From assembly GCA_038496445.1 (NCBI GenBank), contig JALMLS010000585.1, forward strand, positions 394,224 to 458,223: a DNA stretch of 64,000 bases, read 5' to 3'. The stretch is from Trichosphaerium sp. ATCC 40318. Taxonomy: Eukaryota > Protista > Tubulinea. The notes under the pieces were generated by a model. The model worked only from the letters and a program-made list of their open reading frames with translations. It made no database searches and had not been told where the DNA came from. Of this stretch, positions 6,762-10,448 are shown in pieces. The translations under genes were made by a program, and so were the position numbers. Within the stretch, counting starts at the first letter, position 1, and every line of letters starts with the position of its first letter.

Positions 6762-8187
6762 ATGCAGACATCTAAAGCAAATATACCTTTTACAATCGAA
6801 GATGTCGCTAAAGTAAATATATACTTGGCGGAGTACTTTAAACAACTAAACATGCATCCAACAAGAACATCTACCGGTAAAGAAAAGCAAACAGTAAGTC
6901 AACAACTGATAAAACTACAAAACTCTAATAATACACCAAGGATAGTGACGTTCGTCGTATGAACGAAATCGAAGGCGGTGTTGATGACATTGACATGCAC
7001 GGACATTTGGGCAAACAAAAAGGCTGGAAGGCTCCTATCTTACGTACTTTTTGCGATGTGGAAGCAAGAAAAGGTTACGACTCGATGAAAGCACATGAAT
7101 ACAGTGAAGACCCAGAAACTTTAAAAATCAAAGTGAAGGAACTTGCAAGACTCATTAAAGCTTCTAAGCATTGTGTCGCATACACAGGCGCTGGTATATC
7201 TACTGCAAGTGGTATAAACGACTATGCATCTCAATCAAAGGATTCTATGGCAACAGGAACTAAAGCAAAAGGACGTGCTAAGAAACGATCTGGTTTGGAT
7301 GCTGAACCTACGTTCTCGCATTATACACTTGCTGCTCTTTCAAAGGAAGGATATCTTAAGCACTGGATACAACAAAATCATGATGGCTTGCCACAAAAGG
7401 TAATTAATTTGTTCACAAACACGTGTTTTTTTTTGTTATCGTACTTGCTTTGATTTTCGTTTCTGACTGGTTTCTTCAGGCTGGGTTCCCACAAGAAGAC
7501 ATAAATGAGATACACGGCGCTTGGTTCAATCCATCAAATCCTGTAGTACCAATGTCTGGTAGTCTCAGAGACGACTTGTTTGACTGGATGTTGGAAGAAG
7601 AGCAAAAAGCTGACTTGGTTCTTACACTTGGAACAAGTCTGTGTGGTATGAACGCCGACCGTGTCGTCAAGACAGCTGGAAAGAAATATGTAAGAAAAGG
7701 AAAAGGTCTAGGATCTGTCATCATTGGTTTCCAAAGAACAATACTTGATCCTTTGGCTTCACTTCGCATTTTTGCAAGCATTGATGAAGTTATGCTTCAT
7801 CTGGCCATTGAGATGAAACTCCCATACAATCCAGTCCCATACACACCCTCAATCCCAGAAGAAGCGAAAACAAAGCGCAAAAATGTATACAGAGTACCTT
7901 ATGACCCAAAGACTGGGTTGAAAAGTGACACGAAAACAATGGAATGGGATTTGAGAAAAGGCTCATTGATAAAGTTGACAGGTGGCCCAGGTGTAGGATT
8001 TAGTGGAAAAGTACTACTTACGCCAGAGCATGCTAAGCGTAGAATAGCGTATAGAGTACAATTCCCATTCACAAGAGAAGGAAGCAAAGATTTTGGCAAA
8101 GTACTTAAATGTTACAGCCTTGGTACATGGTTTATTGAAGGCGCTTGCAAAGGCACTCTCAAGCAACTACCTTTTATTAATGAGTAG
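6762..8187 (+). CDS. Sir2-family (sirtuin) NAD-dependent deacylase, class IV-like, 3 exons
   Basis: Exons 6762-6893, 6941-~7399 and ~7480-8187. Motifs VAYTGAGISTASGINDY, AEPTFSH, QQNHDGL, EIHG and ADLVLTLGTSL. Confidence 0.9.
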
Positions 8188-8731
8188 AATGAATTCGTGT
8201 ATTTAAATTAAAACCATTTGTAAATAAAACATTGTGCATAATCTATCACGTGTTCATTGTACAACTTAATCATGTTTGAATGACAAAAAAAAACCAAAAT
8301 AAGTTCTTAGGAAACCTTCTCAACCCTCCTCTAGAATGCTCTTGAAAGAGACTCTTAGTAAGGGCTGCTGGCTATAGATATAAGGTAGTTACTTTCAAAG
8401 TTCTGTTAAAGATTGCAAGGACAAATGACATTACACAGTATATTGTATTAATACCATTTATTTTTTAGGCCGGAAAATGTACTTCAAAACACCACATGAT
8501 CTTTCGCCATAAAATGATCTTGCCAGCGTTAAAATACTGGAGGTTGTAAACAACAATAGCTCTAATTGCAAAGTACAACACGGCGAGTGTTTAGGTTAAG
8601 TTTCAGCTTTAGTTCAGTGATAGTAAAAAAAGTGGTAAACAATGGCGGAAGTACGTGTTTAAAGAATACCACAATGAGTGAGGTTGTCTAGGCACTACTT
8701 TTAGCGGTTTGAGGTATAACGTTTTCTTTAG

Positions 8732-10029
8732 ATGTTCCTGAGGTCCTCAGGGAAGCATGGGTTTAAACTGTTGTCTTCTGTGGAGACACACGAGTCAAAT
8801 CAGCGTATTCCTAAGGAAAAATTACTGGAGATGCTCAAAGCCGAGGTTACAATGCGTTGTTCCAAGGAAGTACGCGTATGGTACAGATAAACTAATTAAT
8901 AATTAAATTTAGTACCAAACGCTCTACACGCAGCAAGATACAGCTGAATGGTTGTTAGAAGTTGAAACTAAGCTCCAGAAGCAGTTGCTAATAGATTTCG
9001 ACATGACTGAATGCTCTGTTAGCAAGTACAGATCTCAACGCGGTTTGTATAAAGATGACAACGATATAAGAGGTACGCTTGAGTATCTTTGTCGATTTGT
9101 TATCTAACTGACGTCTTTAAAGACGCTGCTATATACATTAAATACGATAGAAGCTTCAGTGGAGTACTTAGTGTTGGCGACATAGCTCCTGATGTCGGTC
9201 TAGTTACCCTTGAAGAGAAAAAAGTACGAATAAAAAAACCAAATCCTGGCTTTAGTCAGCATCAATGTCAACCATCTGATCAACCTGTTAGGTTACCTTG
9301 TATGAGCTGATGCGCCTTGAGGAGGAAAAACCATGTGTTATTATTGCAGGTACAAGTGAATATAAAGAGAAAAGTAATAGTATGTTAGAAACGTTTAAAG
9401 CTTTTTTAGGCTCTCACACGTGACCCCCAATGAGAAACGCATTGCCTACTTTTATGAAGATGGCAGAGCGTTTTGCTGAGAAATGCAATTTTGTTATGGT
9501 GTATCTCATGGAAGCCCACGCAGCTGATGAATGGCCTCTTGGCACAAAAGTACATTATCTTATTCTGTAATGATTCTTACTTGTGCTAACAAATATAGGT
9601 GACAATAAACCAGCACAAGACTAATAAAGAAAGAATAGATGCAGCGACAGATCTCAAAGAAAAATACAAAATCAACTTTCCTTTAGTTGTACGCTCTCAA
9701 TTTTTTTGTGTACTGAACTTCCAAAGTCATTTTTTTTTATCTTTCTCGTTTTTTTCTTGGATTAGTAGCTATGTTGTACCATTTTTCCTCGTTTTGATTT
9801 AGTTAATTTTAGGTTGATGGTATTGAAAATACTTTCCATAAAACGTATGCAGCTTGGCCTGAGCGTTACTTTATTGTAGACAAAGCAGGAAAACTCGCAC
9901 ATATTGTACACAACAATACAATCATTTTTATTCTTATTCTTTTTAAAACAGGCTGTACCTGGTCCTATGGGATACACAAGCGCTCATATTGACCAAGTTC
10001 AAGAATGGTTAGAGAATAGATGCCTATAA
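8732..10029 (+). CDS. Iodothyronine-deiodinase-like (thioredoxin/Prx fold) selenoprotein; UGA 9421-9423 read as Sec
   Basis: The spliced frame reads ...GVLSVGDIAPDV.L...KPCVIIAGSHT-[TGA]-PPMRNALPTF...NFVMVYLMEAHAADEWPLG...NQHKT.KERI.AA...VVDGIENTFHKTYAAWPERYFIV...GPMGY...EWLENRCL*. All deiodinase motifs continue in frame past the UGA and a SECIS lies downstream. The start codon is uncertain (possible micro-exon at 8674). Confidence 0.9.
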
Positions 10030-10069
10030 TACAGTTCAAGAGGGCTGTGAAGATGTTGTTTCCGTCTGG

Positions 10070-10135
10070 TAAATCGAATGATAGTACAACAGTAAAACCT
10101 TGAAAGAAGCTTGTTGTAACTTGACAATACTCGTA
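10070..10135 (+). promoter_or_regulatory. SECIS element (eukaryotic type II)
   Basis: ATGAT (10078-10082), helix AGTACAACAG (10083-10092), unpaired TAAAA, mini-stem CTT-GAAAG-AAG, then CTTGTTGTAACT (10110-10121) and TGAC (10122-10125). It lies about 50 nt after the stop and upstream of AATAAA at ~10150. Confidence 0.88.
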
Positions 10136-10448
10136 TGTTTATCGGTGTAAATAAATGTATTAGGCTTTATTTAATCTACACTTCAAGATATGGATGTAAA
10201 CTAGTGAGTGCTCTTTAACATTGTTGTATATTGATAAATGAGTACACGTGCAATTCTTCAATACTTTTTTTTTCTATGATTATGCCTGCACTAGTGTGGC
10301 AGCGCAGTACATTGCCAACAAATAATAAGTAATTCGTACCTCTCTGATCTCATTCAGGTCCTACGGACGCTTCGTTGGCGAGTGTAGTATTTACAAGCGC
10401 TACTTGAAATACTGCAGTAGTCTTGATACCTGATGTGAAATAGCAATT

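Follow-up and report, generated by a model that had tools for sequence, protein, structure and literature searches.

A selenocysteine (Sec)-containing homolog of the iodothyronine deiodinases was reported in the amoeba Dictyostelium in 2007 (PMC2375036), and deiodinase-like (DI-like) selenoproteins have been listed for invertebrates, protists, bacteria, and one fungus (bioRxiv 10.1101/314781). In Dictyostelium, type II Sec insertion sequence (SECIS) elements that combine an unpaired AAA with U-U mismatches have been described, including one in the deiodinase-like gene (Lobanov et al., PMC2375036). A didA null mutant of Dictyostelium retained normal dechlorinase activity toward differentiation-inducing factor (DIF); hence, the DIF dechlorinase is a protein other than that encoded by didA (PMC3205185). 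A literature search found no paper linking Trichosphaerium with selenoproteins. Here, we analyzed a 64,000-nt stretch of contig JALMLS010000585.1 from Trichosphaerium sp. ATCC 40318 (the window), which in all likelihood contains an expressed nine-exon gene for a 288-residue DI-like selenoprotein that would work by the steps proposed below. A preliminary description of the locus had presented this product as a new kind of protein, a view that does not hold given the amoeba homolog known since 2007 and the DI-like proteins of protists, invertebrates, and bacteria (PMC2375036; bioRxiv 10.1101/314781).

The multi-exon structure was read from a three-frame translation of positions 8400 to 10400, and a 1901-base stretch was compared with four public transcript runs (X1 to X4) from two studies. 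Spliced contigs were present in all of them (4 out of 4 runs, 2 studies), showing that the gene is expressed. The contigs define nine exons on the + strand with splice junctions at 8682/8732, 8869/8913, 9072/9123, 9223/9292, 9349/9410, 9549/9599, 9688/9813, and 9905/9952. The first junction was carried by contigs from X2 to X4 and the second by all four runs. Template-switch adaptor tails on two contigs mark the mRNA 5′ end at 8625 and 8637, and contig 3′ ends fall at 10146 to 10162, around an AATAAA at 10151. The coding sequence of 867 nt runs from an ATG at 8674 to a TAA at 10027 to 10029 and encodes 288 amino acids (159 + Sec160 + 128). A public cDNA, L002 (Joint Genome Institute [JGI] sample 3300016894), has the identical exon structure and differs at 4 of 1000 nt. 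The multi-exon gene of the preliminary description is thus confirmed by spliced RNA, with one correction: translation does not begin at 8732, since the transcript contigs place the ATG in a separate 5′ exon (MSE, then MFLRSS...). An acceptor at 8934 for the exon that follows the 8732 exon was also considered and rejected because the reads place it at 8913, adding YQTLYTQ. As had been anticipated for standard annotation, public gene calls on L002 split the gene into a 159-amino-acid product (P0002, which starts MSEMFLRSS and ends GSHT) and a 126-amino-acid product with the deiodinase domain PF00837. A public protein, P0003, has the same sequence as the post-UGA product of the window gene and carries PF00837.

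The in-frame TGA lies at 9421 to 9423 in the context GGC TCT CAC ACG TGA CCC CCA ATG. Reading through it gives VIIAG SHT TGA PPMRNALPTF...VYLMEAHAADEWPLGTK, NQHKT, VDGIENTFHKTYAAWPERYFIV, and AVPGPMGY...NRCL*, and all of the motifs quoted in the preliminary description were found in the sequence and its translation. The codon was unchanged in every transcript contig. When homologs were aligned at this position, a TGA was found at the same site in five further relatives (L001, L003, L004, L005, and L006/L007; five JGI samples in all), in the context GSHT-U-PPM, GSYT-U-PPF, or GSVS-U-PPF. Almost all of nine further clusters retrieved with an N-terminal profile end at GS-x-[TS], an end that corresponds to truncation at this very codon. 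Identity between L002 and its paralog L001 is 67% after the UGA and 57% before it, and the ratio of nonsynonymous to synonymous substitutions (dN/dS) between L002 and L003 is ∼0.14 after the UGA, indicating purifying selection on that part, and ∼0.10 before it. Were the UGA a genuine stop, the product would be an N-terminal protein of 159 residues, with the downstream frame untranslated or reinitiated at the ATG at 9430. These are just the two pieces that public gene callers annotate, and UGA does serve as an ordinary stop in the paralog L001 and the relative L006. However, the UGA divides a thioredoxin-like core midway through the active-site motif, leaving neither half as a folding unit, and the downstream frame is in phase, gapless, and under purifying selection. 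With a SECIS also conserved in the 3′ untranslated region (UTR) of five family cDNAs, termination at this codon appears highly improbable.

Alternatively, near-cognate decoding or a variant genetic code might insert a standard amino acid, Trp or Cys, at this codon, with no involvement of selenium. The JGI translation of the P0023/P0032 cluster does have W at the UGA codon. But the second TGA-encoded "W" in these records is the natural protein end; the other five Trp codons of L006 and L007 are all TGG, and the sole other TGA in each is that natural end. Every Trp codon inspected in L001 and L003 to L007 is TGG. Furthermore, family proteins have either Sec or Cys at the aligned position and never Trp, and a SECIS would be superfluous. 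Decoding as a standard amino acid is the least probable of the explanations considered, and we give it almost no weight. The annotation itself can be traced in the public records: the JGI calls for L006 (97 to 1011) and L007 (106 to 1020), which belong to the P0032 and P0023 cluster, place W at both TGA codons (codon 162 is the Sec codon and 295 the real stop), and the W translation of codon 295 adds a false 10-residue tail. Taken on its sequence, the window gene very likely encodes a selenoprotein, in which the UGA at 9421 to 9423 would be decoded as Sec160 with the aid of a type II SECIS ∼50 nt after the stop.

The candidate SECIS is a hairpin at 10078 to 10125, which lies in the 3′ UTR of the transcript, ∼50 nt past the stop. 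It starts with AUGA (10078 to 10081) followed by a U-U pair, continues as a 10-bp helix II (10083 to 10092 with 10111 to 10121) having one bulged A, an unpaired AAAA (10094 to 10097), and a 3-bp ministem (10099 to 10101 with 10107 to 10109), and closes with UGA at 10122 to 10124. A pattern scan (ATGA, a helix with 10 bp or more and no more than one bulge, an unpaired AA, and GA) found this hairpin as the sole match on both strands of the 64-kb window (128 kb), compared to 0.23 matches per 128 kb in shuffled sequences. A scan based on minimum free energy (MFE), which gave 5 matches compared to 3.4 in shuffles and missed the element, was dropped in favor of the pattern scan. The Rfam SECIS_1 model (RF00031) aligned over its full length at 10071 to 10138 on the + strand. 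In L001, L003, L004, and L006, equivalent hairpins begin 30 to 52 nt past the stop; they retain the core, helix II, the AA(A), and the ministem with different helix sequences, as judged by hand and by MFE folding rather than by a covariation statistic. A covariance model built from the window SECIS alone found the L003 element (E = 4e-6) and placed those of L001 and L004 correctly at chance-level scores, and a MAFFT alignment of the set was inconsistent with the structure. In the strain cDNA L002, the hairpin sequence is unchanged, although two UTR bases just upstream of it differ. In the L005 3′ UTR (964 to 1100), no canonical AUGA SECIS was seen; its best candidate hairpin has AUGU at the core position. 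The window element fits the description of the Dictyostelium type II SECIS.

Family membership was examined with single exons of the window protein or with pieces of public cDNAs as queries; Pfam and PDB searches with single short exons (30 to 46 amino acids) were mostly blank because of query length. Even so, the exon 6 piece (the 42 residues after the UGA) matched PF00837 (T4_deiodinase) at profile positions 115 to 152 with 27.6 bits against a cutoff of 27, and the only PDB sequences that it matched were mouse Dio2 (9h48) and Dio3 (4tr3), in alignments that begin directly after the catalytic Sec. The uninterrupted post-UGA piece of the paralog L001 (130 amino acids) scored 83.9 bits for PF00837, with E values of 6e-14 for Dio2 and 3e-12 for Dio3. 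In the relative P0032, the PF00837 match (profile positions 99 to 236) is contiguous over the UGA position. The TGA between GSHT and PPM therefore falls at the Sec position of Dio2, Dio3, and PF00837. By these profile and alignment matches, the window gene is a member of the DI-like (PF00837) family, and together with the 3′ UTR hairpin, they support the earlier assignment of a deiodinase-family selenoprotein with Sec at the catalytic position.

The structural evidence comes from P0032, which was folded as the public record was deposited, trimmed to residues 1 to 294 and with the depositor's W at the UGA (mean predicted local distance difference test [pLDDT] score of 80.8 and predicted template modeling score of 0.79); short fragments misplaced by MAFFT were excluded from the alignment used for folding. 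The top Foldseek matches of the full-length model were 9h48 and 4tr3 (E = 1e-8; template modeling [TM] score by target of 0.76), followed by ResA-type thiol-disulfide oxidoreductases and peroxiredoxins. We propose that the C-terminal ∼180 residues form a peroxiredoxin-like deiodinase core that would present the selenolate in S-H-T-U-P-P.

Several features of the active site were apparent from alignment to Dio2 and Dio3. First, the deiodinase-specific insertion is present. Second, all of the residues of the Dio2 proton relay (Ser127, Thr129, Tyr157, Glu160, His162, and His182, plus Trp167; PMC11592359) are kept: S157 and T159, the Tyr, Glu, and His of VYLMEAH, the Trp of DEW, and the His of NQHKT. 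The Ser/Thr/Tyr/Glu/His/His/Trp relay of Dio2 and Dio3 thus appears to be intact in the window protein. Third, the clamp position (Dio3 Arg275, Dio2 Lys241) is nonbasic in the window gene and its paralog. It is Pro in the Dio2 alignment, whereas the printed Dio3 alignment gives Leu, with Pro obtained only after manual realignment of GPMGY with GPDGY. Fourth, two cysteines are implicated in the regeneration of Dio3. Both are absent here. The position of Dio3 Cys239 is Phe or Met, the Cys adjoining Thr-Sec is His, and there is no resolving Cys near the Sec of the window protein. The replacement of Cys by His in S-x-T-U, which the preliminary description had singled out, is thus real, but the position is not a conserved one: it is H, Y, V, I, or A among the relatives. 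In vertebrate DIO2, the residue before T-U is Ala. We infer that the substrate would be a small molecule other than an iodothyronine and that the enzyme would attack a halogen, or some other electrophile, carried by it.

The same gene and the same recoding may instead serve a different chemistry, that of a peroxiredoxin-like or thiol:selenol oxidoreductase acting on peroxides or on protein or small-molecule disulfides, with the relay serving that reaction. ResA-type enzymes and peroxiredoxins are the next-best structural matches after Dio2 and Dio3, Pfam gives a weak AhpC-TSA signal, the clamp residue for the thyronine is absent, and DIF dechlorination is normal in the didA null mutant of Dictyostelium (PMC3205185). 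On the other hand, the deiodinase-specific insertion and all of the relay residues, which are not general peroxiredoxin features (PMC11592359), are kept, and the resolving Cys expected near the Sec is missing. We regard an oxidoreductase as a serious minority possibility.

Some observations weigh against a deiodinase-like selenoprotein or against parts of the proposed mechanism. The substrate and the chemistry are deduced from alignments, and the normal DIF dechlorination of the didA null mutant leaves a dehalogenase role in amoebae unproven (PMC3205185). The full-length structural model is that of P0032, a relative with 30% identity, and not of the window protein itself. A tRNA search of the 64-kb window found none. 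The SECIS_1 alignment reached 16.2 bits compared to a gathering score of 35, Rfam run at the gathering threshold over the whole window gave no match, and the MFE of the hairpin is no better than that of shuffled sequences (z = +1). The hairpin described earlier as a textbook type II SECIS at 10078 to 10125 is therefore present, but with this bit score and weak MFE fold, the word "textbook" is somewhat generous. The SECIS_1 alignment came from a 91-nt search, and a 500-nt search missed the element; its E value of 0.61 spans 4227 families on 182 nt and corresponds to ∼1e-4 for SECIS_1 alone. Since the L001 hairpin is not listed by SECIS_1 at all, this model seems to have little sensitivity for amoebozoan elements of this type.

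The ∼110-residue N-terminal region is charged and is predicted to form five helices (pLDDT of 80 to 93). No membrane helix was found in the window protein; the highest 19-residue Kyte-Doolittle mean was 1.33, in a beta-hairpin. The hydrophobicity and the predicted helices both agree with the earlier claim of a helical N terminus with no membrane anchor. This region also belongs to no Pfam family: weak matches (HEPN_AbiV and others) each appeared in one member only, and an F-box or a ubiquitin in the window gene N terminus received no support from Pfam searches. Foldseek against the PDB gave no match at an E value of ≤0.001, a VIA-wide search with the domain gave a best Z of 6.2, which is under the noise level for helical bundles, and an ESM Atlas search by features was blank. 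An exhaustive phmmer search with exon 8913 to 9072 against 1.8 billion representatives returned one match, the paralog P0001, whose cluster includes an MMETSP0405 peptide (taxid 498012, Trichosphaerium sp. ATCC 40318; Amoebozoa, Discosea) and which shares one sample with P0002 and L003. With a profile of five N-terminal pieces, the region was found conserved in 13 or more protein clusters, which come from Amoebozoa and from soil metatranscriptomes and include one of Ceratiomyxa fruticulosa; Parvamoeba rugata has a relative of the C-terminal piece. Conserved motifs include SGKxG near the N terminus, E..R.S.E.Q, LQK..L, and IY(I/Q)(K/R)xDRS..G.

The domain is thus uncharacterized, as the preliminary description had it, in that neither Pfam nor the PDB has a match, but it is not unique to this gene, given these clusters and, by predicted shape, fungal fusions. 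In the ESM Atlas, the best shape match of the P0032 model is a Mucoromycota ubiquitin + T4_deiodinase cluster, on which it superposes over 275 of 294 residues (TM score of 0.81; root mean square deviation of 2.9), both in the N-terminal domain and in the core. The pairing of helical domain and core thus appears to extend far outside the window gene. We propose that the ∼110 residues fold as a soluble domain of five helices that has been conserved together with the core in Amoebozoa, probably packs against the core, and takes the place of the vertebrate membrane anchor. At the N terminus itself, the soil and forest metatranscriptome relatives (L005 from 85, L006 from 97, L007 from 106, P0020, P0021, P0027, and P0032) begin with MGM[YF]HSTSGK, a MGxxxS N-myristoylation-type signal, and the three Trichosphaerium paralogs (MSEMF, MSAMF, and MDMF) have no Gly2. 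To judge from this signal, lipid anchoring may stand in for the vertebrate membrane helix in some members. A broader idea, which we hold tentatively and consider rather doubtful, is that the helical domain and the deiodinase core together represent an old, undescribed soluble DI-like subfamily of Amoebozoa and early-branching fungi, some of its members N-myristoylated and some fused to ubiquitin or F-box domains. Neither the thyronine clamp nor the resolving cysteines would remain in such a subfamily, which would act on a nonthyronine target, a halogenated metabolite or a protein-linked substrate, with the helical domain as part of the substrate site.

The exons, all on the + strand, can be assigned as follows. 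The 5′ exon (8625 to 8682) holds the 5′ UTR, a short upstream open reading frame (uORF) at 8642 to 8662, and the main ATG at 8674 (MSE), as defined by the 8682/8732 junction, the adaptor tails, L002, and P0002. Exon 2 (8732 to 8869; MFLRSSGKHGF...CSKE), seen in the translation, the transcript contigs, and P0002, begins the helical region. The core of that region is in exon 3 (8913 to 9072; YQTLYTQQDTAEWLLEVETKLQKQLL...DDNDIR), which is placed by the 8869/8913 junction. The translation and transcript contigs define exon 4 (9123 to 9223), in which DAAIYIKYDRSFSGVL is followed by the beta-hairpin that opens the thioredoxin-like core, and exon 5 (9292 to 9349; VTLYELMRLEEEKPCVIIAG). Exon 6 (9410 to 9549), identified by transcript contigs, PF00837, and the Dio2 and Dio3 alignments, carries the active site S-H-T-U-P-P-M and VYLMEAHAADEWPLGTK. 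It is followed by exon 7 (9599 to 9688; VTINQHKTNKERIDAATDLKEKYKINFPLV), which contains the conserved relay His, and exon 8 (9813 to 9905; VDGIENTFHKTYAAWPERYFIVDKAGKLAHI), both based on the translation, the transcript contigs, and the Dio2/Dio3 alignment. The last coding exon (9952 to 10029; AVPGPMGYTSAHIDQVQEWLENRCL) ends with the stop and is defined by the transcript contigs and L002. In the polyadenylation region (10151 to 10162), the AATAAA occupies 10151 to 10156, and the longest transcript contig ends here.

The seven introns within the coding exons (43 to 124 nt) all start with GTAC, at 8870, 9073, 9224, 9350, 9550, 9689, and 9906, in the variants GTACGC, GTACGA, GTACAA, GTACAT, and GTACAC. 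Unlike these, the 5′ UTR intron (8683 to 8731) starts with GTTG. The uORF has six codons (MAEVRV*) and ends 12 nt 5′ of the main ATG. The paralog L001 has MEVCRL* (6 to 26) at the equivalent place, and the truncated 5′ end of L003 (1 to 16) has the same GGACGTACGTGTAG string. Its recurrence in the paralogs suggests that the uORF may be conserved in these selenoprotein mRNAs as a means of controlling their translation. Finally, an open frame of 254 codons (7423 to 8187, + strand) lies 540 nt upstream of the gene and contains GTSLCGMNADRVV. It is probably an exon of a neighboring gene. A Pfam search with it gave no match at an E value of ≤0.01, and a sirtuin identity, considered because of a by-eye likeness, had no Pfam support.

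The analysis corrects the public misannotation of this gene as separate 159- and 126-amino-acid proteins and makes a well-supported addition to the protist DI-like selenoproteins. It does not overturn current views. The find is correct but fairly ordinary because such enzymes are already known in amoebae, the exception being the helical front domain; this unnamed conserved domain is the only moderately new element of the finding. The N-terminal domain, the variable residue before T-U, and the absent thyronine clamp offer handles on the roles of deiodinase-type enzymes before thyroid hormones.

Among the closest described counterparts is Dictyostelium discoideum DI (didA; DDB_G0275741), like the window gene a Sec deiodinase homolog in an amoebozoan that has no thyroid hormones. 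Its type II SECIS has an unpaired AAA, and U-U mismatches lie close to the core (PMC2375036); the window gene and L001 show these features too. Unlike Dictyostelium, the window organism is a marine discosean, and at least three such paralogs (L001 to L003) occur in it. With vertebrate DIO1 to DIO3 (4tr3 and 9h48), the window protein shares the S-x-T-U-P-P Sec, the E-A-H...W insertion, the second relay His, the W-P-E-R/F-E-R motif, the peroxiredoxin-like core, and a 3′ UTR SECIS. Unlike these enzymes, it has no N-terminal transmembrane helix, the ∼110-residue helical domain replacing the anchor and linker, and it has Pro in place of the clamp Arg275/Lys241, His in place of the Cys or Ala before T-U, and no Cys at Dio3 Cys239. 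The Mucoromycota fusions of ubiquitin-like and T4_deiodinase domains (an ESM Atlas cluster of 52 members, 619 amino acids) resemble P0032 in predicted shape and, unlike the window gene, have extra ubiquitin-like domains. Peroxiredoxins and ResA-type oxidoreductases have the same core fold and likewise place the nucleophile at the N terminus of helix alpha-1, but that nucleophile is Cys, and they are without the deiodinase insertion, the relay, and the helical N-terminal domain found in the window protein.

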